Source: Paramicrosporidium saccamoebae KSL3
Taxonomy: Eukaryota; Fungi; Cryptomycota
NCBI GenBank assembly: GCA_002794465.1
Contig: MTSL01000041.1
Location: 77,113 to 109,112, forward strand
Length of the DNA: 32,000 nt
Direction of reading: 5' to 3'
Made by a program: the position numbers and the translations under genes. Positions 4,531-31,582 of the stretch are shown one piece after another. A model generated the notes under the pieces. That model ran no database searches. It had not been told where the DNA came from and was given only the letters and a program-made list of their open reading frames with translations. Each line of letters starts with the position of its first letter. Position 1 is the first letter of the stretch.

Positions 4531-7370
4531 TTACAGGTAGCCATCAGTCGAGATTGGTCGGACAGACAGATAGAAATCATCAAAGAATGCAGCACCGCGG
4601 GGGGCAACCAACCAAGCCCACACTTCCAATGCTACTAAGGGGGACCTTGAGGCCGACATGACCAATCCGGTACTAAAGGCCATGGGCTGCCATTTTGTCT
4701 CCTCATATGGATCCCAACCGGAATAAAATTCTTGCACTTTGTCAGCCCATACATAGCGCAATCGGAGTTGGAGGGAGAGTTGGGCCGGTGGTCCAAAGAG
4801 TCGATCAACCCGCGTCCAGGCAGACACGCTAATCTGGCAAGCCATGGTATGACATTCAGAAGGCAATTCATCAACCGGGATGGTTTGATAGATGCCCCGT
4901 CCAACTGGAGTATCTGGTCCAGCTCCAATGTATATTGATATGGCATAGTCATCAGGATGGAGTGACGCCGTGTGGTGTGCTTTGCGGGCCGGAATGGCAA
5001 CTTCAGAGGGCAAAGAGTCAGCGGGACGGAGTGCCACTAATGCGGCACTGGTGCCAAGGGATCGTTCCCAATAATCATCGTTTAAATAGAAATTGCCATT
5101 TAGCACCAAATTCCGTTCATCATAGTACGGCGGGGTTCTGATTAGTAGCTCCTTGCCGGATGGATGGACGACTGTGTGATTTCCAGGTCGGACCAACAGT
5201 CGATAATAACGCTCCGGGTCCAACCCCGTAATTAGGGCGTGCTTGGGCGCAATTGGACTCGAATGAGAGGGCTCCACATAATGGCTGAACGTCAAATCGC
5301 CCGGTTGATCATCGTCGGTGGTTTCAGTAATGTCAAAGACATCAATTTGGTACAAATGATAGTCAATCTTGCTGGCCCATTTAAACTCGACAGAGAAGGG
5401 TTGCATGTCATACACACGCACATTGTCAACATCGTCGGGATCAATCTCTACAAATCAATACCAATCAGATAGAATCATTTACCTTGGATGGCCATGGTGG
5501 TCATTCCAAAGACGGACAAGGTGTCCAGAGAATGTTTCTGCAATGCCATTTTCAGAAATCCCCAGACACGCGACCTCATCCGATCATAGGGTGTCTTATT
5601 TAGCCAATGCGGGTCCTGTCGATGGGTTAGCTCCACGGAGCGGCAATTGGCCACCTTTATGTCTGCCTCCATAGCCCGTAGGAAAAAGTCTTCGTGTTCG
5701 CCCAGCTTGAGGATGGGATCCCATCGAATCTTCTCCAGCACAACTCTTCGGGCAACAAAAATGTTGGGCACCAAGTCAACACGCACACAGGTGCTGCCTG
5801 GGATGCCTCCACGATCACCATGGATTAGATGCACTTGACGGTCCCTCCTCTCAAGCAACCCGACATAGTTAAAGCCGTGTTGATTGCGATCGGCAGGACT
5901 ACTGGCAGCCACAATGTCTAATCGGTTGGAGATTAATTGGTGGACCAAATAACCCAAATCGCTATGTTCTGTAAACACGAAATCGTCATCGAGAATCATC
6001 ATTAGGGGCGTCTCTACCTTGTCAACCATAATATTGCGTGCCTCAGATAGACCGGTGTCATAGGGCAGCGGGAGATAGGTAAAGCCGCGTTTGGGTCCAG
6101 CCGGAGTGTCAAAGGCTTGGGAACCATCATTGGCTACCAAAATTGGCAAGTTGGGATAGTACTGACGAAGGGACGAGACCAGCTCAAACACCTTGTGCAT
6201 CCGGTCCATCGTCTTGACCGTCACAGTCAGTAAGGCCGACAAGTTGTAAATGGACACAATAGTGGTAGTGCCATCCATCTCAGCTTTGACAGTAGTTATT
6301 CCGAACAACGGATCAGGAGTCACTGTTACTGTGGAGAGGCACTGATTAATCTCTGCTACCGAGTCTCCAGAGCAGCTTGAGGGCGAAATCTTGCCAAAGT
6401 CAACTTCCAGTTGGACCGTCGACTTGGAGCTGGCTCTAACGTCCAAGTGGATGGAAGTGCCGTCAGTGACATGGTAAGCCACTGATCCCTCCCGCAGTAT
6501 ATCCATAATGCTCTCCTTTTCCACTGAAATGTTTTTGGTTTGGGCCCCAAAGAAATGCAGACTCACAGCCCGTCTCTTTATCCGTTCCAGCATTTCTCGT
6601 GCCGAAATTCCCTCTGGAGCAGCTTTAAACAATTGCGTGGCCTCTTTGTAGTTTACCGGATAGAATACTTCCGATGGCAATTGTATCACTAAATCCCTTG
6701 AAACTTGTTTGCTGGCCATTGTGATGGCTCTCGGTCCGGCATGGTTGAATACGGTTGGATCATATGCCCCTCCAAATCCAATTTCAAGAGCCCGTTTTAG
6801 CAGCTGCGAACCGCGCTCAGCAAGCATCACTCCGGGTGCCAAATACATTCCCCCCGTCAGACACCAATCGCATGTTTCAGGGACACGATCACGGCCGATG
6901 ACAGTGCGTCCAGCGGATGGACCGACAAGCCATTCCTGTATGGGCATTGGTCGCAGTAGCAGAGCATCAAAATCGGAATAGACTCCGCCGTCGCGATAAA
7001 GCAGAGTGAAGCGCAAGAGATCCGTCAAATGAGAATAGTAATAAGGACCAGTTTTCCATTTTTCATGGTTCTCCAGCCAGACAGTGGCTTCCTCAGACAC
7101 TTGGGCTGCCAATGTCAAAAATTCTTCGTCAATCGTCACAAGGTCCATAGAATAACCAGCCTCATAGAACGGACGCAATATCATGCGCCAGTTGGCCCAA
7201 TTAGTGTCAGTGATATAGAGCCGCAGGTGCCAATTCGGATGGTGATGAAAATAGGATTGAAGCACCTGCAAATGTCGGGGTCGCAAGGTAAAGGCAGGTG
7301 TGGTCCACATCATGTGCAACAGCATTCCATGGACACATTCCACAAACAGCACAAACACAAGAGCAAGCAT
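4531..7370 (-). CDS. Multidomain glycosyltransferase: signal peptide + GT32 (A4GALT-like) + GT12/B4GALNT-like + FN3 + CBM-like domain; exons 7370-5483 and 5447-4531, 934 aa
   Basis: A 35-nt GT-AG intron (5482-5448) joins track ORFs 5475..7394 and 4531..5421 in frame (CAA G|AG ATT GAT). GT32: HLTDLLRFTLLYRDGGVYSDFD and LPSEVFYPVNY...SLHFF. B4GALNT-like: YNLSALLTVTVKT...ARNIMVDKVETPLMMILDDDFVF. FN3: ITGLDPERYYRLLVRPGN. CBM-like: NLVLNGNF...GIYQTI...AFFDDFYL. The track start at 7394 is TTG; the first ATG is at 7370. Confidence 0.8.
5448..5482 (-). other. Spliceosomal intron, 35 nt
   Basis: GTAAATGATTCTATCTGATTGGTATTGATTTGTAG; removing it restores a continuous frame. Confidence 0.8.
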
Positions 7371-7678
7371 GTGATGAATGGAGATGTAAAACAAACGAGG
7401 TTCACCAAACGAACAATGAGAGGCGTATTTACCGAAACGGGAACGTTTATAACATACAATTGGCTTTATTGAGTTGCTACCATGCTACCATGAGACCATG
7501 AGTGTAATGACAGAAATACAAAAGTGATTGTTACTTTAGGCGTGATCATTGACTTGATCGTTCCATATTTATACTTACAGATCCTATCACTATAGCTCTA
7601 TACCTTATACCCTATACCCACACATCTATCTCTACAACTCTTCACTGACCCGCTGATTCGTTAAATCGCTGACCCACC

Positions 7679-17183: not shown

Positions 17184-18680
17184 TTATTGAGGTTGAGTTT
17201 GAGTTTGAGTTTGAGTTTGAGATTGAGGTTGAGTTTGAGATTGAGATTGAGGTTGAGACTGAGATTGAGGTTGAGGCCCAGGCTCACTTGAGGAGGGGTC
17301 TAGCACTTGGGGATATTTTTTGGAAATCACTGTTTGTAGGTGAGATCCTGCCGGTAATTTCTGGGGCTCGTCCGCTAGACAAACCAAAAGCGCTGTATCT
17401 CCAGCATCAATAATTTTCAAGTAAAGTTCAGGGATGATGAGGGCAAGAAGAAAGTATCCCACAAAGCTAGCCATGCAATCGGAGAGCTTGGCATCATACA
17501 CCATAATCCTAAATGCAACATCGGTAAATGCTGACAGGAGGGCTACGAGGGTGGAAGAAAAGAGCACAAAGCTACCGATGCAAGAGTCGCCCGCCACTTT
17601 TCCCACTGGACTCAAGGCCATCAGGTCCCAAGTCTCATTAGCAGCGGCATGGTAGGACACTCCATACAGTGCCACATGACTAAAGGCAAATTTGTTAAAG
17701 TTGCGTCCAGCCTTGTCCAGTGTCTCCTTCGTATTCATCAAGGGCTCAGACTTGATCCGAGACAATTCCAAGGCAGTCCCAAAGATCCCTCGTACCGTCG
17801 ACACTGGACTGAGTAGTATCGAGCCATAGCAGATCCCACCAAGAGATTTGGCCGCCATCACACAGGAGCGCCACACAGTCTTTTGCTTAGACACATTGTT
17901 GATCGGATCGGACGGCGGTTCTTCCCCAGTTTTCGAGTGCTTCCTATGGCGACGCTCATAGTCTATTCCAACAGTGCCCGCGACAATTGTCCGCATAAAA
18001 TTAAGTATCACCTGCGCAGTCCACCAGAGAGACAATAAATAATATATGGCGATACCAAGAGTCAGGAACATGTAACGTAGGCCAAACAATCCAACCATGG
18101 CACCGATGGCAAGGCCAGCTAGTGAAGAGTAAATGTGGGCAAGAATGGCAGTAAGGACAACAAGCCAAAAGAGCGAATGGTACTTTTGCGCAAAGTGGTT
18201 CACCTGTATCAACAAGGCGGTAGTGATTTCAATATCCCTCAGATTGCTGACATAGACTATCAGTACAATGAAGCTAATTATGCCATATACGACACCTCCA
18301 AAGATGGTGGAGTACATGCCGACTAACGCAGCCCACAGCGCAAGTACAACAACCAGCCCCAAGTTCACTAGATGAATCGTTCCCTTTGGGCATAGTCTAA
18401 TCAAAAAGTGTCCAATGACTGTCAAAGTACAAGATACAACGACAACAATCCCGGTGTGGTAGGCGAGAAGAAGAGCCCAGCTTTCGACAGCATCCACAGC
18501 CACGTCTGCCACGTTGATGTGTTCACGGATGATTCCATAGGCAGTGGCGCCCATGAAGAGTATGATGTGGACAATGAATACAATACCAGCAAGCCGATCG
18601 CGCCATTTCCCAGAGTCAACGTCAAGATCTGCTACTTCAGGGTCGAGCATGATTGCGTTGGAGGGTCTGGATCCGGCCAT
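17184..18680 (-). CDS. Choline transporter-like (CTL/SLC44/PNS1 family) protein, copy 1 (498 aa)
   Basis: WTAQVILNFMRTIVAGTVG, SLGGICYGSIL, FNKFAFSHVALYGVSYHAAANETWDL and DTALLVCLADEP match the family pattern. About 10 TM segments. Confidence 0.85.
   Translation of the reverse strand: MAGSRPSNAIMLDPEVADLDVDSGKWRDRLAGIVFIVHIILFMGATAYGIIREHINVADVAVDAVESWALLLAYHTGIVVVVSCTLTVIGHFLIRLCPKGTIHLVNLGLVVVLALWAALVGMYSTIFGGVVYGIISFIVLIVYVSNLRDIEITTALLIQVNHFAQKYHSLFWLVVLTAILAHIYSSLAGLAIGAMVGLFGLRYMFLTLGIAIYYLLSLWWTAQVILNFMRTIVAGTVGIDYERRHRKHSKTGEEPPSDPINNVSKQKTVWRSCVMAAKSLGGICYGSILLSPVSTVRGIFGTALELSRIKSEPLMNTKETLDKAGRNFNKFAFSHVALYGVSYHAAANETWDLMALSPVGKVAGDSCIGSFVLFSSTLVALLSAFTDVAFRIMVYDAKLSDCMASFVGYFLLALIIPELYLKIIDAGDTALLVCLADEPQKLPAGSHLQTVISKKYPQVLDPSSSEPGPQPQSQSQPQSQSQTQPQSQTQTQTQTQPQ
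17187..17276. repeat. Coding hexamer microsatellite (TTGAGN)x15 encoding an X-Q dipeptide tail
   Basis: 15 consecutive 6-bp units. The minus strand reads PQPQSQSQPQSQSQTQPQSQTQTQTQTQPQ, then stop. Confidence 0.9.
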
Positions 18681-18779: not shown

Positions 18780-20081
18780 CTAACAATTCTCAACCTCTGA
18801 TAGCTGGGGAAAGGTCCGCTCGAGTGTCTCAAATAATCGGGGCGCGCGCTTCTTTACCTTTTCAGGCTGCTCCGCCAAGGCAATCAGCATGGATAGATGG
18901 CCGTGGTCAAGAATCATAAAGAACAAAGTCGGTATGACTGCACCAAACACGCACAGCTCTAAAAACATTAACACACTCTGCCTCTCATCTGCGCCAAAGA
19001 TCAAAATCCGCGAGAATATGGTGAGGAACGCGGAGAGGAGGGCAATCATGGAGGTGGCCTGTGAGAGACTGTAGGAGACAGTATTTGCACTGTATACAGC
19101 CATTACGCCGGTGGACTGTACCGTGTCCCAGGTTTCTCGGGAGGACTGCATAAAGGGGCGCCGGTCGGTGATATGGTTGAATGCGAAATAGTTAAAGGCC
19201 CGAGGCTGGGTGGAGGACAGACTGATGATAAACAGACCCAGGGACCAGCGAAGGACACTGTAGACGGCAGAAATCAGCAGGACCGCCGCAGAACCGACAC
19301 AGATGTTATCCATCCCGTGGGAGAGCGTGTCCTTAACAACAGATCGCATCAGGCCGCTGGGAGGAGCACCTGTGGTAGTGAAAAAATTGGCATATACTCT
19401 GGCCGTAATGCTCCGAAGCGTGCCCAATATAACCTGACACGTCCAGAAAATATTCATAAAGAGATATATCGCAATGTAATACGAGTAGGCCTGCAGAGAG
19501 TCGGGTAGAGCAGCAAGGAAGCCAGCCCATGCGAGGATTGCAAGCTGCACGTAAAAGTAGATTAGAAGTGCACCGATGGGAGGGATGTAGTACAATCCTG
19601 GGTTCGCGTCAGCACAGATACAGGTGGCCCGTAATAGTTGTCCAGAGAATTGGTACGAGGCCCGACCCCGCCAATACCTCCACCCTAAAAAGAGCGACAC
19701 CAAGACCATTAAGATGGAGATGAGATAGTTATAAGTGGCTATGAAAAGGGCGTACAGGAGGAGAAGCAAGATGGTCCCACCAGCAGCCATGTGTTGGAAT
19801 GCCACGGGGGCCTTTCTCGCAATAATCATGGCCACGACGACAAACCCCGTGGAGATGACAATCTCGTAACTGGACATCATAATGGCTCTCTTAGCAGTGC
19901 CACCAAGTCCCATGTGTTCGAGGAAGCCGACTGCAATGCAGCTGATCGCTAATATCATGCTCATCGACAAATGGATCCAGAAGGATGCTGACATGACCTG
20001 GCCCACAGTATCACAAGGCTCGTCGAATTCCTCCTCGGGATAACTGCATGGCGGCTCTCCTGACATTATCATCCAATGCAT
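18780..20081 (-). CDS. CTL/PNS1-like protein, copy 2, more diverged (433 aa; alternative ATG at 20066)
   Basis: WTCQVILGTLRSITARVY, NICVGSA, FNYFAFNHI...SSRETWDTV and LIALAEQPE...LERTFPQL align with copy 1 and with the family pattern. Confidence 0.75.
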   Translation of the reverse strand: MHWMIMSGEPPCSYPEEEFDEPCDTVGQVMSASFWIHLSMSMILAISCIAVGFLEHMGLGGTAKRAIMMSSYEIVISTGFVVVAMIIARKAPVAFQHMAAGGTILLLLLYALFIATYNYLISILMVLVSLFLGWRYWRGRASYQFSGQLLRATCICADANPGLYYIPPIGALLIYFYVQLAILAWAGFLAALPDSLQAYSYYIAIYLFMNIFWTCQVILGTLRSITARVYANFFTTTGAPPSGLMRSVVKDTLSHGMDNICVGSAAVLLISAVYSVLRWSLGLFIISLSSTQPRAFNYFAFNHITDRRPFMQSSRETWDTVQSTGVMAVYSANTVSYSLSQATSMIALLSAFLTIFSRILIFGADERQSVLMFLELCVFGAVIPTLFFMILDHGHLSMLIALAEQPEKVKKRAPRLFETLERTFPQLSEVENC

Positions 20082-20353: not shown

Positions 20354-22551
20354 ATGAAAGGCGGCATGATGTTGGAAATCCAGGAAATGGAATATTTTGC
20401 CCAACAAATTGATGAGGATGCTGGTCCATCCATGAGGGCATCGCAGGTGGATCTGTTTCATAAGTCTGCATTCGCTGAGCAGAATATTTCGACAGACGAG
20501 CCTATGGTGTTGTTGGAAGGATGCACACTTTCTGGAGAACCTGTGCAATTCAGGGCCCGGCGTACTCTCTCCTCCCAGCCGACCAAGAACGACAATGACA
20601 GACTGGCCACGCCATTTTATCAACTTCTTCGAAAAGTTGAGAATCAAAGGGATATTCCCTCAGTAACGGCCAAGACCACCACTCATAGACTTGAGGAAGA
20701 GCTGTGGACCGATAAATACCATCCGAAGCGATTTATTGATCTTATCGGTGCCGATCGCGGAAATTTAGAAGTGCTCCAATGGGCTACGCAATGGCGAAAT
20801 CACATTGAACGCAGTGAACCGCCCCCCGAAAACAAATTGCTTCTGATTAGCGGTCCCCCGGGGCTGGGAAAGACTACCCTCGCCCATGTGGTGGCACAGA
20901 CGGCTGGCTTCCAGCTGGTGGAAATTAACGCCAGCGATGAGCGGACAGGCGATCTGGTGGTGAACAAAATTGAGGCGGCAATCAGGGCAAATTCAATGCT
21001 TCCAGGAAGGAAGCCGAATCTGCTGGTTATCGACGAAATTGACGGGGCAGCTGCAGGGTCTTCCGAAAAGAGCCTTATAGCCCATCTTGTAAAGATTGCA
21101 ATGCCAGCCGCCACAGACGGCGAGAATGACGACGGACCGACGAAAAAGAAGAAGAGAAAAATAATGTCCTTGAGACGGCCAATTATTTGCATCTGCAACG
21201 ATCTTTACGTTCCTGCTCTAAGGCCCCTGCGGAACATTGCCCAAGTGATCACAATGCGGCGGCCAAACCAATCGGTTTTGACGGGACGACTGCGGGAAAT
21301 TTGCGATGCTGAAAAGCTAAAAGCCGAGAGCAAAGCATTGGCAGAGCTGGCTGATCGGATGGACTGTGATGTACGAGCTTCTCTGCATGCACTCCAATTT
21401 ATCACCCGACAGCATCCTGGCCCCATCACGGCAGCAAAGTTGACAAAGTCGCTGTCAGGGATGAAGGATGCGAACAATACGACGTTTGCCGTTTATGACT
21501 CTATCTTTCATGCCGATTCACGAGCCAAGGGTGCTGCAAGCACCGTTCTGGAAAAGATTCAGAGCCATGGAGAATACGATAGGCTGACAATGGGGGTTTT
21601 TGAATTGTATCCACAGTGCAAATTTTACGATGACACGCGACTCAGCAAGGTAAATGACGCTTTGGACTGGTTTGCATTTTCGGACCAGTGTCACAAATTT
21701 TCCCTTGATGAGCGATTTTCGTCATACCAACCATATGCACTCGTAAAGACGTCGCATCTGTTTGCTGCGCCTGTAAATCCATCCCTCAAGTTCCCAAGGA
21801 TAGACTACGAACAGCATATGAAGACCACTGCTAATTCGCAAAATTTGGCGAGTTATATTTCAGGATTGCCCCCGATTATCCGGGCCGGACGAGCGGCATC
21901 CGATCTGGCGATGGAGCGGGTTCCAACTGTGGTAAAATTGGTCACGCCCAACTTGAGAATTGTACCAGCACATTAGTTTATAATCTTTAGGCTAATCCGC
22001 AATTGCTAAAGCCAGAGGAGAGGCAACGCCTGGAGCGGATTGTGCAAGTCATGTTGGGCAATGGTCTGACCTATCGTCAAGAACGCCGGTCTGACGGGCT
22101 ATATGATTTCAACCTTGAGCCGTAAACCTAATAATGTTTTTCATATCCTAGGCCGATTGATGCACTTGCCTGTTTCAACAAAGCAGAAAAGTCGTTGAGC
22201 GGACATGAGAATGCTGTCCGACAAATGATTGCGAGTCAGATCGAGGCGGCCAAGATCAAGTCCATTGGGCATGTCCCCAACAGCACTGTTGGCACGGGCC
22301 GCAGTGCAGAATTACTAAAGGCGTACGCAGGAATGTCGATTGTGGCGGTTGCGCCTCCAGCAAAGACTGTTGTGAAGCGAGACTTCTTTGGGAGAGCAGT
22401 CCAAAAACCGCCCAGCCCCGCCAATAACCAATCCGCCACTGAAATGCAAGTCGATGCAATGCCACCAATATGGTTTAAATATAATGAAGGCTACTCCAAC
22501 GCCGTACGGAAGACAATCCGCATCCAAGATCTCTTTCGAATAAATATGTAA
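20354..22551 (+). CDS. CTF18: Chromosome transmission fidelity protein 18 (RFC-like clamp loader); exons 20354-21961, 21991-22121 and 22152-22551, 712 aa
   Basis: LWTDKYHP, Walker A GPPGLGKTT, Walker B VIDEIDG, RPIICICNDLY and the C-terminal WFKYNEGYSNAVRK are present. Introns at 21962-21990 (29 nt) and 22122-22151 (30 nt) restore LRIANPQLL...TYRQER...LEPPIDAL. Confidence 0.94.
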
Positions 22552-22575
22552 AGCGCTGAACCAGGGATATGGGAT

Positions 22576-22628
22576 CATGAGGGAGTCACGAGGAATTCAT
22601 GAGGGAGTCACGAGAAATCCATGAGGGA
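22576..22628. repeat. 22-bp tandem repeat, about 2.4 copies
   Basis: catgagggagtcacgagRaatY starts at 22576 and 22598; a partial catgaggga starts at 22620. Confidence 0.85.
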
Positions 22629-22856
22629 TTCTCTCTCGCCTATGAATCCAAGATAGAGGTTTATTATAGGTTCTATTGTGAGAAATTTATGAAAAGTCTC
22701 CTCATCTCTACGGGTCAATGATTCTTTCATGTCCATAGATCAAATATTCTCTCGTAAATACAAATCAGGGCCCTTCAGCCGTTACTATAACCCCTATTTT
22801 CTTTTCTTTTCTAGTTTTCATTGGCTGACACCCACGGAAGACAACTTGACAATAGT

Positions 22857-23422
22857 ATGGCCTCGTTTGCTGGCTGTCCACCTTATGCGCCATTCTTTGG
22901 ACTGGCAGGCTCTTCTCTTGCCATGAGTCTGTGCTGTAAGCCGTATAGTGTTGTCTAATATCTAAGGTGTGGCGTCTGCCTACGGAACGGCGAAAGCAGG
23001 CACGGCTATCGCGGCTATCAGTACAGTGAGTCCTGCATCGGTTATGAAGTCACTGGTTCCCGTCATCATGGCCGGCATCCTCAATATTTACGGCCTCGTT
23101 ATAGCGTTATTCATTACCACCTCCAGTAATCCCCTCACCAGCGTCACTCATCTCTGTTTTAGTGGATTCAAATCGATCCTATACACTTTTCGCCGGTTCT
23201 CTCGATTTAGCGGCTGGGCTGATGGTCGGCTCGGCGTCCCTGTGTTCCGCCTGGGCTATCGGTGTTCTCGGCGATGCGGGAGTACGTGCCATCCCGAAGC
23301 AGCCTCGTTTGTTCGTTGGAATGGCGCTCATTCTTGTCTTTGCGGAAATGTTGGGACTATTTGGGTTGTTGCTGGCCATTGTAGCACATAGCAAGGCTGC
23401 CGAGTTTGGGACTTGTGGTTAA
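22857..23422 (+). CDS. VMA3: V-ATPase V0 proteolipid subunit c (VMA3/VMA11 type); exons 22857-22935, 22967-23125 and 23163-23422, 165 aa
   Basis: [38 protein letters not shown] and [21 protein letters not shown] (proton-carrying Glu present). Introns at 22936-22966 (31 nt) and 23126-23162 (37 nt). VMA3 versus VMA11 is not resolved. Confidence 0.9.
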
Positions 23423-23833: not shown

Positions 23834-24163
23834 GGGGTAGGTGCAATGATCCTATAGTCGGAGATTTAAGTGTATTTATCAGGTCCCTGTTTATGTCAGA
23901 CTGCATCTAGAACTTGAAGCTAAAACAAGATGATATTATTGTACAGTCAATAACAGGGTGCACAATGATACTGGAAGGGACGACATGTTTACGTTCAATC
24001 AGAAAGCCGAGTGGCTTTTTGGATTTCCAAACACGGGAAATTTAGCATCAATATGGGATTATTGTGGCCAAAAGCGACTGGAAGGCGGCTAATATGCGCG
24101 CTTACATACAATATCTGTCTAATTACCCGATTCCAGCTAATTACCAATTTCTGCACAGCGCCC

Positions 24164-24169
24164 TATAAA
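24164..24169 (+). promoter_or_regulatory. Candidate TATA box
   Basis: TATAAA begins 33 nt upstream of the ATG at 24197. Confidence 0.45.
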
Positions 24170-24196
24170 GGATATTCAGTACCCCGCTCCCGCAGA

Positions 24197-24970
24197 ATGC
24201 AGTTCGGAAAGTTTCTGCTCGTCGCCGCTACCGCCGTCCTCTCCTTGTGCACCATTGCTGAGGCTGTTGGTCACAAGTCTCACCATCGTAGCCACAAGTC
24301 TCGTCATCGCGGTCACAAGTCTCGCCATCGTGGCTGGCGCAAGCTCGTCCACAACAAGTGCAAGAACGGAGGTGAAATCGCAGTGGCCGTCGGTGGACAT
24401 ATTGATAAGCGCATGATTCGCACTGTGAAGCGTGCGATCAAAAAGGGACATAAAGATCTGACCTTGGTAATTAATGGACGCGATCTTGCCAAGCCCTCCA
24501 ACCGCAAGAACAAGCGCCGCAATGTCTCCTTTGTCAAGGATGTTGCCAAGTATGTCTCGTTTGCCCTCCTTCCCTGGAACACTAAGCGCAATCTCCGTGA
24601 CATGAAGTTCCGCCGGCTCCATAGACTGTATCACAGGTCTGGAAGGGCTATTGAAAAGGTCATTGGAACTCGTCCTTTGGTTGCCCATCTGCCCGTCAGT
24701 CTGATTAAGAAGAGACGCGTCAAGTACCTGAGCCGCAAGGGGTTGATCATCTTGGGTAACACCACTCACTTCACCAACCCGAAGAAGGATCTGGCCAGAA
24801 AGACCTTTATTGCTCTCCAAACTCCTCGTGTCCATCACTTTAGCAAGCTTCTCCGAGATGCAAACAAGGCCATGCTTGATACCGTCTCTCTAGCCACTTG
24901 CTTGAATAAGAGAATCTATAAGGGTGGACTGGAAAATGAAGACGCCGATAATGCTGAAGCGGAGAATTAG
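24197..24970 (+). CDS. Secreted, highly basic protein with a degenerate polysaccharide deacetylase (CE4/NodB) fold, 257 aa
   Basis: Signal peptide MQFGKFLLVAATAVLSLCTIAEA is followed by three 7-aa His/Lys/Arg repeats (21-bp units at 24269-24331). The CE4 scaffold is recognisable (C...EIAVAVGG, LTLVING, W...L, EKVIGTRP, TVSLATCL...Y), but the catalytic motifs are absent. The track start at 24011 is GTG. Confidence 0.7.
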   Translation: MQFGKFLLVAATAVLSLCTIAEAVGHKSHHRSHKSRHRGHKSRHRGWRKLVHNKCKNGGEIAVAVGGHIDKRMIRTVKRAIKKGHKDLTLVINGRDLAKPSNRKNKRRNVSFVKDVAKYVSFALLPWNTKRNLRDMKFRRLHRLYHRSGRAIEKVIGTRPLVAHLPVSLIKKRRVKYLSRKGLIILGNTTHFTNPKKDLARKTFIALQTPRVHHFSKLLRDANKAMLDTVSLATCLNKRIYKGGLENEDADNAEAEN

Positions 24971-25122
24971 TCACGGTAATTGAAAACATAGGTGGCATAC
25001 CAAGTAATAATATGAGTGCATTTTGTCTATTAGTAGTAGTGGTGATGGTGGTGGTGATGATAGGTGCTAGTGTTTAGTACCGCTTCACTCGTCGTCTGCG
25101 CTACCTGTTGGTTATCGGTGGT

Positions 25123-25220
25123 CCATCACTAGTATTTATTAGCCATCTTCCATCACTAATCCTCACCCCTAACACCCATCACTAATCTTCACCCTTAATA
25201 CCCATCACTAATATTTATTA
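25123..25220. repeat. 26/27-bp tandem repeat with a ccatcacta core, 4 copies
   Basis: ccatcacta occurs at 25123, 25150, 25176 and 25202. The first and last copies continue with RtatttattA. Confidence 0.85.
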
Positions 25221-25323: not shown

Positions 25324-26319
25324 ATGCTGGGTGGCCATAGCAGAACAAGTTCCGTGGATAGCGTCAGTTCGATAGAGTCACACGATCGGCTACAAAAGGA
25401 CATTCAAGATGTTCGTCTCGCCGTCATCAAGATCTCCAACATTTCATGGGATTTGACCAGCGGCGATGTCATGGATTTTCTAGAGTCGGTGCCGGTGCAG
25501 AAGCACTACATTCACATTCCAATTGACAGATCCACTGGAAAAACAAAGGCCGACATGTTTGTGGAGCTGTCGTCTATGGTGGAAGCTATCAAGTGCATGG
25601 CAAAGTACAACAAGCGGATTCTTAAGGGAAGGGCGGTGACGGTGAGTCTGTCCTCTTTGGAAGAACTCAATTCGGTCCACTTTCCCCCTGTGGCTGTGGG
25701 TGGCGATTTTCTTAGTCAAGCAGAGGCTGTGTCATTGGTAAACATTTGCCGCAACTACAAAGTAAGCCACAAAACAGTCAGCTGACTTCCTAATTAGGCA
25801 CACTTTTCGAGAAAATGCGCTGAACGCCCCTTTGAACATGTCATTAGCATCCTACGATTGGCCCCTTGGTATCAGATGGAACATTTCATGACAGACCGCC
25901 TCTTTGCCGTTGTATCCTCAACCGTCGACGCTCTCTCGGAACATCTCGCGCGACCCTCTGCATCCACTGGCAAGATGACCCCCAATGGAAGCCCCGCCAC
26001 CCCAAACTCACTGTTGCCAAGTACCCAGCTTAGCACCGACCTACTTGACCGTTTGTTGACAGCCACGGACCGCTTCCCGGCCTTCACGCCACACCAAAAA
26101 ATGGCCGTCCAGCGGGTCGCCGAACGAAAGCCGCGCTTTGGAGAGCCAATTCCGCTGATGGTGGAGCCCAAGCCGGCCAGACACTTGCGGAGGTCCTCCA
26201 TTGATCGAATCCTGGAAGAACTGGACACAGGAACCAAAAGGACAGAGGCAGTGGATAGGCTATTTAAGAATGCGTTTGACCAGATTATGCTATCGTCCGT
26301 GAATTCAAACAGCGACTAG
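25324..26319 (+). CDS. RRM-containing RNA-binding protein; exons 25324-25761 and 25798-26319, 319 aa
   Basis: RRM: VIKISNISWDLT...IHIPIDRSTGKTKADMFVEL...KRILKGRAVTV. A 36-nt intron at 25762-25797 (GTAAGC...CTAATTAG) joins CRNYK to AHFSRKCAERPFEHVISIL. Confidence 0.82.
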
Positions 26320-28938: not shown

Positions 28939-31071
28939 CTATGCTGCAAACTCTACGCCCGCAGAGGGGACGACCTGTTTCACAAATGCCAGGATACGCG
29001 CGTGTCTGGTCCATTTTCTCTGACTATCAACCGTGTCTTTACAGCGAACCTTTAAAATAAACTTGAGCGCATCAAAGTTCTTGTCAGCCGCACCATAATC
29101 AGCTGCAACTACGGCCCGCAACTCAAATGATTGGTAATAGTCCTTGTTGTTTGAGATCAAAAAGGCCTCAATCTGACGACGGAGATCAGCTAGTCTTTCC
29201 GTCTCCTCATCCACAGAAAGCCGGTTATGGTCTGGCGCCAGGATAGAAAATTCGACCCTCTCCCACTGCTCTCCGCCGCGTGAAAGATTGGTGAGTGGTC
29301 CAACTGCCAAGACGTGGTTCGGCATGGTCACCAGAAGCCCATTCCAGCGTTTGAAAACTGTATTTTGGATGTTAATATGCAGAACTGTGAGGATTTCCTC
29401 ATCATTATGACCCGCCTCTTTCCCAATCAGAACCCGATCACCAATGTCGTATGGATGCACAACAAAGAGAAACAGGAGGGAGCTAAAGGTCTTGTTGGCC
29501 GAGTCCATGATGATGAAATTCATTGCAAAGATGAATGATGCGGAAAAGCCCAGGATGTTCTGCACCTTGACACCCAGAATGGCCAGTAGCAGGAGGAACA
29601 GGCCTGCAGTTGACACTACCTTGCCAATAGTGTTCAGTATGGATAGCGCTGACCCAGTATTGGCGACATTTTGCACAAGGTTCCTCTGTTCGCGGAATAT
29701 TCGCACCAGTGCACCTTTGAACTCGCTCTTTGTGATTGCCCCATCTCGGTTCACATCAAAGACATAATAGGCATCTCGACAAGCATCCTTATTATCAATG
29801 ATGATTGAAAAATCCTCCATTGTTAAATAGTCGCGGCCAGCAGGGCACAAGTAGTGAAATGCCATCCTTGCCATAATCTTTGCATCGTAGTCGGTGCGTG
29901 GTGGGGCATTGGCAACAGATTCACATCCGTTCTTCTGGATCGCTCTCAAAATTTTGGACCGAAACTCGGAATAGTCTGTCGCAGCATCCTCAGGGCTTGA
30001 TTTGTTTCTTGACGCAGCAACTGTTATTGTACGACACCAATGGAACACAAATTCTGGGATAATGAATGGAAGATTGAACATGAAGTTTGAGTATTCAGTA
30101 GCACCGTTCTGCTCCTTTTGTTTATCCGCTCTTCGGGTGGAGCGCTCTTGATTTGCAGCCATCAGTAACTGATCAACAATATAAACTTTGAACTGATTCT
30201 CAATAATCCGCTTTTTAAAGGAAGTCTCTTGGAAGGAATTTTTCACCACCATCATGACCACAGAACCAACCGACATTACCAGCCCTGCCACAATACAAAA
30301 TAGGAACAGTCGCGGGACATGATCAAATCCACAAAATCCCTGAGCAACTGTGGCATCCTGTAGGAGTGTACTAGCGCCAAAATCTTCAAGACAGGATGCA
30401 GGAAAATTGGCAACCCAAAAAGCACCGGAAATGAAGGCACCTATTGAGATGGATAGTGGCACAGCCACGGCAGAGATCCTAGCAGGATGGTCAGTCTTTG
30501 ACAAAAATGTATTGGCCTGAAGATACTTTGACAACTTTTTCAGTCCTACATTTGTCCAAATTGGAGCAAAAACTAGGATTACAGCAAACAACGCCCAGGT
30601 ATCCAAGGAAGTACGTGCATAGACGGGTGTTTTTCCGTGGAGGAGCACTTTACAGGATAACCAAATTGTAGAACACAGCAGCAAGTGACCCAAAAGGAGA
30701 TTATTCAACAGATTAGGGGACAGAATATTCTTAACGGCGACATTTTCATCACGCTGTAGTTTGACTCCCTCCGTGTCCTCGCCAAAGGATTCTGCAAATT
30801 CACGCTCCTTCTCCCGATCATCCCCGATCCAATCAAAAGAATCACTGCTCGCGTTGGAGAGGCTTCCATCTTCTGATAGATTGGGTGATGAAATGGATGC
30901 GTTGGGGGATGGTTGTACTTCAAGTCTGTTGGATGCTTTGGGGGACGATTGTGCTTCAAGCTTGTTGGATGCTTTGAGGGACGATTGCGCTTCAAGCCTG
31001 TCAGATCCTGTCTCGGTAACACGTCGTCTAACTGGACCTTGAGAGTTCAATGTCTTTTGTGCGCCTTCCAT
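28939..31071 (-). CDS. MscS-like mechanosensitive channel with EF-hand (fungal Msy type), ~710 aa
   Basis: EF-hand YVFDVNRDGAITKSEF, MscS core FLFVVHPYDIGDRVLI...TVLHINIQNTVF...MPNHVL and N-terminal TM helices are present. The track start at 31089 is TTG; the first ATG is at 31071. Confidence 0.9.
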   Translation of the reverse strand: MEGAQKTLNSQGPVRRRVTETGSDRLEAQSSLKASNKLEAQSSPKASNRLEVQPSPNASISSPNLSEDGSLSNASSDSFDWIGDDREKEREFAESFGEDTEGVKLQRDENVAVKNILSPNLLNNLLLGHLLLCSTIWLSCKVLLHGKTPVYARTSLDTWALFAVILVFAPIWTNVGLKKLSKYLQANTFLSKTDHPARISAVAVPLSISIGAFISGAFWVANFPASCLEDFGASTLLQDATVAQGFCGFDHVPRLFLFCIVAGLVMSVGSVVMMVVKNSFQETSFKKRIIENQFKVYIVDQLLMAANQERSTRRADKQKEQNGATEYSNFMFNLPFIIPEFVFHWCRTITVAASRNKSSPEDAATDYSEFRSKILRAIQKNGCESVANAPPRTDYDAKIMARMAFHYLCPAGRDYLTMEDFSIIIDNKDACRDAYYVFDVNRDGAITKSEFKGALVRIFREQRNLVQNVANTGSALSILNTIGKVVSTAGLFLLLLAILGVKVQNILGFSASFIFAMNFIIMDSANKTFSSLLFLFVVHPYDIGDRVLIGKEAGHNDEEILTVLHINIQNTVFKRWNGLLVTMPNHVLAVGPLTNLSRGGEQWERVEFSILAPDHNRLSVDEETERLADLRRQIEAFLISNNKDYYQSFELRAVVAADYGAADKNFDALKFILKVRCKDTVDSQRKWTRHARILAFVKQVVPSAGVEFAA
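30895..31002. repeat. Coding 36-bp tandem repeat, 3 copies, in the MscS-like N-terminus
   Basis: Units at 30895, 30931 and 30967 encode (D/N)(R/K)LE(A/V)Q(S/P)S(L/P)(K/N)AS. Confidence 0.9.
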
Positions 31072-31582
31072 GGTGTAATGATGCTGCAATGCTAATACGA
31101 GTTACTATAGTGGCTGTAAACAACGAGGCTCATTCGCCGGCGATCATGGTTTCCTACGTTCATTGGTTCGGATGGAGCAACAAGCACCGCGATTGGCTCG
31201 GTAAGAGAGTATTGCGTGTGGTGAGGTCCCACGAACAGTAATCAATTGTCGTGTATTTGCTACGAGAGCACGCTTTCAGATATTTTACCTTTTTAATAGA
31301 ACATGATCCTTACTCAGTTCATATTTATTAAGGGCACCATTACAGATTGCCGATTATAAGTGGATATTATCTAACTGGAGCCTTTGTAAATTCACCAACG
31401 TTGCGATTATCAGGCCGACTAATACATTCGTGCAGATTTCTCTTTCCATCACACCCCTCAGTCTCAACAAACCTCGCCAATTATCATATTACTTCATGCT
31501 CTGATTGACTCAAATAAGGATGGTTGCCGAGATGGGCGCTTATGCCCGTTTATAATAATTATAAAAGTATGGATAAGTGCAA

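Follow-up and report, generated by a model that had tools for sequence, protein, structure and literature searches.

A strongly basic CE4-like protein of Paramicrosporidium saccamoebae, predicted to derive from fungal chitin deacetylases and to lack their catalytic residues

Described CE4 pseudoenzymes and the Paramicrosporidium locus

Pseudoenzymes of carbohydrate esterase family 4 (CE4) are already a known kind, represented by the microsporidian protein ECU11_0510 (EcCDA) and by BA3943 and BA0150 of Bacillus anthracis (PMC5855634). EcCDA is an inactive CE4 protein of 254 amino acids (aa) located at the microsporidian endospore and plasma membrane (PMC5855634, PMC7040029). The subject of this report is a gene at positions 24197-24970 (plus strand) of a 32,000-nucleotide stretch of the Paramicrosporidium saccamoebae KSL3 genome (assembly GCA_002794465.1, contig MTSL01000041.1, positions 77,113 to 109,112 of the forward strand), referred to below as the window. 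An initial annotation, made from the sequence alone, had described its product as a secreted, polycationic CE4/NodB-fold protein without catalytic residues, here called the pseudo-deacetylase. P. saccamoebae, an intranuclear parasite of Saccamoeba, is sister to Microsporidia and forms chitin-walled spores with a polar filament; three chitin synthases are known from it (PMC5701793). The accessible parts of the genome paper and its supplements contain no mention of deacetylases, CE4 proteins, secreted proteins or effectors (PMC5701793).

The pseudo-deacetylase resembles EcCDA in its predicted CE4 fold, the EcCDA structure (2vyo) being the third-ranked Foldseek match of its structural model (E 2.7e-8, template modelling (TM) score 0.69, root-mean-square deviation 3.5). 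The two proteins are also of nearly the same size (254 aa vs 257 aa) and come from sister lineages. EcCDA is without the catalytic-base Asp and the metal-binding His and is inactive (PMC5855634), and its C-terminal ...C(L)... motif aligns with VSL..CLg of the P. saccamoebae product. The likeness has limits: in sequence, active fungal chitin deacetylases (CDAs) stand nearer to the Paramicrosporidium family than EcCDA does, and the extreme positive charge, basic N-terminal extension and acidic tail described below are not reported for EcCDA.

The B. anthracis proteins BA3943 (7bkf, 6hm9) and BA0150 (4m1b) are likewise CE4 barrels with an incomplete catalytic and metal-binding set, and together they stand at Foldseek ranks 2, 4 and 6. 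They differ in being bacterial, with an unrelated sequence context, and in having lost the machinery only in part. BA0150 keeps the catalytic Asp and His (PMC5855634), and for BA3943 there is a crystal structure of a mutant whose enzymatic activity was restored (title of PDB entry 6hm9), whereas in the P. saccamoebae product the whole machinery is lost and the loss is common to the family.

The fungal CDAs ClCDA (2iw0), VdPDA1 (8hfa) and AnCDA (2y8u) give the best profile matches, which extend over nearly the full length. They share with the pseudo-deacetylase the order of the five CE4 motifs at similar spacing, a signal peptide and, in ClCDA, an aligned pair of cysteines. In contrast, their catalytic and metal-binding residues are all replaced in the P. 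saccamoebae product, which also lacks the insertion found in ClCDA between motifs 4 and 5. Its isoelectric point (pI) of 11.3 stands against values of 2.7-4.8 for the characterised CDAs (PMC5855634).

CE4-type fold and the state of the catalytic motifs

The gene is an uninterrupted ATG-to-TAG frame in a single exon, encoding 257 aa plus the stop codon, and an identical product is annotated on the same contig. As judged from sequence comparison, the gene is real, because its homologues align from Met1 to the C-terminus and because gene order around it is conserved. Two antisense open reading frames (ORFs) on the minus strand, 24176-24838 and 24313-24603, were set aside; neither has a family match, and they mirror the strongly biased coding strand.

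A word-indexed search recovered four relatives with 44-60% identity. An exhaustive hidden Markov model (HMM) search of 1.84 billion cluster representatives gave 23 matches. One of these, the weakly matching P0023 (1916 aa), is a TPR-repeat protein; it was excluded from the alignment as spurious, leaving 22 representatives. The resulting family alignment and profile comprise 24 members. A second word-indexed search, made with the 24-sequence alignment, added no further relatives, and low-complexity words probably crowded out candidates in it. The relatives that were checked derive from assemblies of metagenomes or read archives and from one assembly at NCBI.

The order V-ATPase subunit c, pseudo-deacetylase, RRM/DUF8400 protein is retained in the related contigs L001, L004 and L007, and L008, which carries the most divergent member, keeps the upstream neighbour. 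The gene is present in one copy in the window and is single-copy wherever its context could be read. Its product is 54% identical to the L001 orthologue, which lies within the 49-68% of most neighbouring genes; the gene therefore keeps step with its housekeeping neighbours in rate of change and does not behave as an arms-race gene. The family is thus small, deeply diverged and syntenic, and is found in Paramicrosporidium-like Rozellomycota. Ser-rich, mucin-like inserts or tails are present in P0007, P0016, P0022 and P0025. In the two most divergent members, P0022 (L008 1803-2969) and P0025, the inserts are long and Ser/Thr-rich; one follows the signal peptide, the other separates the motif 4 remnant from the motif 5 remnant, and Arg/His-rich runs flank them.

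Profile comparisons place this family with the fungal CDAs. Against the PDB, the 24-member profile matched 8hfa with an E-value of 5.4e-10 (profile positions 50-244) and 2iw0 with 1.1e-5, followed by more CE4 structures. An hhalign comparison of the family with the ClCDA segment gave 96% probability and an E-value of 2.2e-9 over aa 50-245. Distant members provide a further bridge: P0018, P0019 and P0020 join the family at E-values of 1e-15 to 1e-20, score 30-49 bits on PF01522 (above the Pfam gathering score of 23.1) and match CE4 structures pairwise, ClCDA for example at 2.7e-9.

The predicted structure points the same way. AlphaFold2, run with the 24-sequence alignment, returned a model with a predicted local distance difference test score (pLDDT) of 88 overall and ~97 across aa 46-240, in which strands and helices alternate over aa 60-236. 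The top 35 Foldseek matches of this model in the PDB are all CE4 proteins (E-values down to 7e-9, TM scores 0.6-0.73); they include 2vyo at rank 3, BA3943 at ranks 4, 6 and 9, and the fungal CDAs 2iw0, 2y8u, 7bly and 8hfa. An earlier model built from 5 sequences, now superseded, was poor (pLDDT 65) yet gave the same CE4 answer. Structure prediction had been named beforehand as the check on whether a NodB barrel is present, and it yielded a CE4-type barrel, in keeping with the fold assigned in the initial annotation and with the nearly full-length profile matches to fungal CDAs. The combined profile and modelling evidence supports descent of the product from a fungal chitin deacetylase of the CE4/NodB type.

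The barrel and the remnants of the five CE4 motifs, located by profile and hhalign alignments, are as follows.

24359..24919, plus strand: CE4/NodB-like barrel, aa 55-241, bounded by Cys55 and Cys235 (AlphaFold2, Foldseek, hhalign, profile against the PDB)
24386..24403, plus strand: motif 1 remnant, TFDDGP replaced by AVGGHI, with G66 and G67
24569..24586, plus strand: motif 2 remnant, H(S/T)xxH replaced by LPWNTK, with P126 and W127 conserved
24686..24697, plus strand: motif 3 remnant, RxPY replaced by HLPV, only the Pro being kept
24767..24781, plus strand: motif 4 remnant, DxxD(W/Y) replaced by HFTNP, the aromatic residue becoming P195
24809..24826, plus strand: motif 5 remnant, IVLxHD replaced by IALQTP

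Distances between the motifs are close to those of ClCDA: 59 residues against 55 from motif 1 to motif 2, 39 against 38 from motif 2 to motif 3, and 30 against 30 from motif 3 to motif 4. The order and spacing ascribed to the motifs beforehand are therefore kept. To assign individual residues, ClCDA was mapped by hhalign in global mode, as an hmmbuild/hmmsearch mapping reached only part of the protein. The canonical residues correspond to the following positions.

ClCDA D49, catalytic base: G66
ClCDA D50, metal ligand: G67
ClCDA H104, metal ligand: L125
ClCDA H108, metal ligand: K130 (or T129)
ClCDA R142, motif 3 Arg, which positions the base: H164
ClCDA D172, buried motif 4 Asp, partner of the catalytic-acid His: N194
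ClCDA H206, catalytic acid: T209

The substitutions first read by eye (DD to GG, H..H to L..K, RxPY to HLPV) agree with these alignments, which add the change of the motif 4 Asp to Asn and of the motif 5 His to Thr. The loss extends across the family. The motif 1 DD pair is found in 0 of the 19 members covering the region, and no member has either of the two motif 2 metal-binding His residues, which indicates that the loss predates the radiation of the family. A motif 5 QH(D/G/A) persists in a few distant members (P0019, P0020 and P0024). Position 164 is H, Y, W, L or F, and His or Tyr in most members. The replacing residues are themselves conserved (G66 in 80%, P126 in 95%, W127 in 75%, and H/Y at 164), which suggests that the old pocket is under some constraint. 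On the basis of these substitutions, the product is not a canonical deacetylase and is presumably unable to deacetylate.

Secretion, charge and proposed function

Outside the barrel, the product carries the following elements.

24197..24265, plus strand: predicted signal peptide covering aa 1-23, MQFGKFLLVAATAVLSLCTIAEA; cleavage probably follows AEA (hydropathy heuristic)
24269..24331, plus strand: three [GS]HKS[HR]HR units, aa 25-45, rich in His, Arg and Lys (pLDDT <55)
24932..24967, plus strand: acidic C-terminal tail, aa 246-257, ENEDADNAEAEN (composition; pLDDT ~60)

One further element lies on the barrel itself.

24611..24724, plus strand: basic stripes on helices alpha3 (R139, R143, R147, K154) and alpha4 (K172, K176, within KKRRVK), identified by family conservation

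The N-terminus has a positively charged n-region (K5) followed by a hydrophobic region of ~16 residues, with the best 11-residue hydropathy, 2.5, at aa 7-17. Full-length members of the family share this layout: a short positive start, a hydrophobic core of 11-16 residues, (A/V)EA, and then K, H or R. A search of the product for a second hydrophobic segment found none (best 19-residue hydropathy 1.0), and the hydrophilic C-terminus has no signal of the glycosylphosphatidylinositol (GPI) or HDEL type. Only two cysteines, C55 and C235, lie beyond the signal peptide. Neither varies in any member that covers it, and they align with C38 and C237 of ClCDA, an N-to-C pair. In ClCDA these two residues reportedly form a disulfide that ties the N- and C-termini together. 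The proposed secretion is thus backed, at the level of heuristics, by the conserved hydrophobic N-terminus, the (A/V)EA site, the lone hydrophobic segment and the CDA-type cysteine pair.

The product contains 31 Lys and 28 Arg (59 together) against 10 Asp and 7 Glu (17 together), 6 of the 17 acidic residues falling within the last 12 aa. With 16 His, it has a net charge of ~+42 and a mass of ~27 kDa. The recounts of K+R, D+E and the C-terminal acidic residues are identical to the figures of the initial annotation, and the motifs it listed were located at aa 64 (AVGGHI), 125 (LPWNTK), 164 (HLPV), 103 (RKNKRR) and 171 (KKRRVK), with the three (G/S)HKS(H/R)HR units beginning at aa 25, 32 and 39. 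Such a composition stands out locally. Of the 19 window ORFs that reach or exceed 150 aa, the pseudo-deacetylase has the highest K+R fraction, 0.22, with 0.13 for the runner-up and a median of 0.09; its net charge per residue, 0.16, compares with no more than 0.017 in the six ORFs that follow it in K+R fraction.

High basicity is a family trait, with a pI of at least 9.3 in 22 of the 24 members. The [GS]HKS[HR]HR units are encoded by a 21-nt tandem array (24272-24331, 2.9 copies), and the triple His-rich repeat is specific to P. saccamoebae; in the closest orthologues one KHK(R/S)R.RGW unit takes its place. Lys or Arg is found in at least 75% of members at K41, R43, K54, R95, K104, R139, R143, R147, K154, K172, K176 and R201. 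Those in alpha3 and alpha4 follow an i, i+4 pattern and form stripes on two adjacent outer helices, which may serve as a polyanion-binding surface. Some 10 of the 24 members end in a clearly acidic tail, their last 25 residues containing 8 to 19 D/E.

We favour, at a probability of roughly 0.55, the reading that the product is a secreted, CDA-derived pseudoenzyme that works as a non-catalytic binding or scaffold protein, most likely in the spore wall or at the wall-membrane interface. The protein would be exported and act without catalysis on the exterior of the parasite cell. In the chitinous wall of the spore, or where wall and membrane meet, it would occupy a site comparable to that of EcCDA in the sister group Microsporidia. 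The basic surface, made up of the alpha3/alpha4 stripes, the N-terminal extension and loops, would hold polyanions; acidic wall proteins, anionic membrane lipids and host polyanions are candidate partners. While the protein is in transit and not yet deployed, its acidic tail may shield some of this charge. A wall role is favoured because the CDA ancestors act on the fungus's own chitin, because an inactive CE4 protein of equal size is retained in the sister lineage at the endospore and plasma membrane, because the gene behaves as a core gene (single-copy, syntenic, with a neighbour-like rate), and because relatives carry Ser-rich modules typical of wall and surface proteins.

Several observations weigh against this reading. 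The wall location is argued by analogy, and CE4 membership itself is drawn from profiles and a predicted structure; in single-sequence searches, the window protein alone had no match in Pfam or the PDB. The family-profile match to EcCDA (2vyo) is weak (E 0.005) and covers the C-terminal third only, and the FVDG of EcCDA keeps the second motif 1 Asp where the P. saccamoebae product has AVGG. The motif 4 aromatic residue, which lines the sugar groove, is lost, so that chitin binding is uncertain, and a polycation would be repelled by chitosan. Basic residues are spread over the whole surface, on helices and loops, with no one obvious site. Finally, Cardin-Weintraub heparin-binding motifs (XBBXBX/XBBBXXBX) number 0 in the mature sequence, against 2.85 +/- 1.5 in shuffled versions, and they are not conserved across the family. 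This last result bears on a possible parallel with EnP1, NbSWP25/26 and EhSWP1, small secreted spore-wall proteins whose basic motifs bind host glycosaminoglycans (PMC7040029). The resemblance would be functional, as these adhesins have other folds, and the analogy is weakened because the heparin-binding consensus motifs are absent from the P. saccamoebae product.

The alternatives differ mainly in where the charge would act. The main rival, which we consider unlikely though worth keeping in view, is that the protein is a host-directed polycation released into the amoeba nucleus, where it would bind host DNA, RNA or chromatin for manipulation or uptake, with the dead barrel as a scaffold. The net charge of +42, the pI of 11.3, the runs resembling nuclear localisation signals (NLS) and the conserved signal peptide would suit such a role. 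The growth stage of P. saccamoebae is intranuclear and a naked protoplast without a wall, and the genome paper proposes that the parasite lives off host nucleic acids while lacking the nucleotide transporter of its relatives (PMC5701793). Against this, the gene differs from typical effector families in being single-copy and syntenic and in diverging as fast as its neighbours; the Ser-rich, mucin-like modules fit a wall or surface protein better; intranuclear life is documented for P. saccamoebae and not for its metagenomic relatives; and the Pfam search of the product gave no nucleic-acid-binding fold or motif. Also in its favour, self-masking acidic tails occur in nucleic-acid-binding proteins, and the acidic tails of this family recall them. 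A more specific version, in which a dead carbohydrate esterase has become a histone-like, supercharged secreted protein that coats or captures host DNA or RNA, its acidic tail serving as a charge mask during export, is speculative and distinctly improbable; if true, it would represent a kind of nucleus-targeted effector not known before, and the CE4 fold would have acquired a new fate. Between the two broad options, the data lean to a wall or polyanion binder over a host-directed binder of nucleic acids or membranes.

A place in the infection apparatus (polar filament, polaroplast or anchoring structures), as a functional analogue of the basic, Lys-rich, Cys-containing PTP2 of ~30 kDa, has only a small chance of being right. 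The product is basic, of ~27 kDa, and has a predicted signal peptide, but this is an analogy of size and charge, and nothing in the sequence is specific to the filament. We know of no polar tube protein with a CE4 fold. The spores do have a polar filament, yet no polar filament protein was found by sequence (PMC5701793), and several microsporidian wall proteins localise to the polar tube as well (PMC7040029). It is very improbable that the protein is not secreted at all, its N-terminus being a signal anchor or irrelevant, and that it is an internal basic protein of the parasite's own nucleus or nucleolus. The NLS-like runs and histone-like charge would fit such a protein; the ~16-residue hydrophobic region followed by a conserved small-x-small (AEA) site, the descent from secreted CDAs and the retention of the aligned, invariant pair as the only cysteines of the mature chain all speak against it. 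We give least credence of all to continued enzymatic activity through other residues, for example a metal site formed by H68, H164 and H191, or a non-metal hydrolase. The conservation at the former active-site positions could be taken in its favour, and for BA0150 a different hydrolytic activity has been raised as a possibility (PMC5855634). However, none of the seven canonical residues survives and no acidic residue stands in for the base; H68 and H191 vary across the family, and CE4 proteins without the His pair are classed as inactive (PMC5855634). A non-catalytic protein of the wall or wall-membrane interface thus remains our preferred reading.

Gene neighbourhood and implications

Upstream of the start codon, two putative promoter elements can be recognised.

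24139..24148, plus strand: CCAAT-box-like element AATTACCAAT, an identical 10-mer of which lies at a similar upstream distance from the L001 orthologue
24164..24172, plus strand: TATA-like element TATAAAGGA, 24 nt before the ATG, recurring in L001

L008 has a variant of the TATA-like element, TATAAAGA; upstream of the L004 and L007 orthologues, neither TATAAAGGA nor AATTACCAAT was found. Codon use in the pseudo-deacetylase gene is biased towards AAG (29/31), CGC/CGT (20/28) and GTC (12/18), and 11 neighbouring genes are less biased (~0.65, ~0.4 and ~0.25, respectively). The codon preferences cited in the initial annotation are confirmed for these three sets, but not for CAC (8/16). Its proposal of high expression is accordingly supported in part, by the codon bias; CAC does not contribute, and the TATA-like element is common to some orthologues only.

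The window also encodes ICE2, OST48, an Rpb2-type polymerase subunit, a phosphodiesterase, an AAA protein, V-ATPase subunit c, a CAAX protease and two choline-transporter-like proteins, and it fits a compact, intron-poor fungal genome. No tRNA and no Rfam family was matched in it. The 3' intergenic region after the pseudo-deacetylase holds a (TGGTGA)n run and a 26-nt direct repeat (25040-25059 and 25150-25213); the repeat, CCATCACTAATCCTCACCCCTAACAC, is present in 2.4 copies with 91% matches and a 13-nt sub-period. The downstream neighbour (25324-26319, plus strand) is an RRM protein of the DUF8400/DUF8399 type in two ORFs, 25324-25785 and 25858-26319, and its adjacency to the pseudo-deacetylase is kept in all related contigs reaching that far.

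On the upstream side, a GenBank model (20354-23422; L006 1-226) describes one 791-aa product with both AAA/Rad17-type and V-ATPase c (ATP-synt_C) domains. The L001 counterparts were called separately, as 711 aa and 139 aa, and because L001 has separate genes the 791-aa P. saccamoebae model probably fuses two genes artificially. The V-ATPase c part (22969-23422) is divided between two overlapping frames, each of which matches PF00137 (22969-23391 and 23162-23422), a layout compatible with one short intron near 23130-23180, among the few apparent in the window.

Tandem choline-transporter-like paralogues (PF04515) occupy 17184-18680 and 18780-20081 on the minus strand. The same pair is found in L001 and L004, which indicates an old duplication, and the paralogues are ~22-32% identical to their counterparts, far below the other neighbours. 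Further away, 5475-7394 (minus strand) encodes a 639-aa two-domain glycosyltransferase with a Gly_transf_sug/Gb3_synth-type region and a family-2 domain. A 716-aa ORF at 28939-31089 (minus strand) combines an EF-hand with a following MscS-type mechanosensitive channel domain; in L002 it likewise follows the CAAX protease.

CE4 pseudoenzymes have so far been isolated cases. What is new here is a whole conserved family in which, according to the alignments, the loss of the machinery is complete and the acidic pI of CDAs has shifted to ~10-11, reaching a charge of ~+42 in P. saccamoebae, together with a basic N-terminal extension and an acidic tail. The family offers a handle on whether chitin deacetylation was abandoned once on the way to Microsporidia or separately in each lineage, and on the role of a dead enzyme that has been retained. 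It also provides a concrete candidate, easy to express, for the proteins that such an intranuclear parasite would carry at its surface, in its wall or at the host interface.

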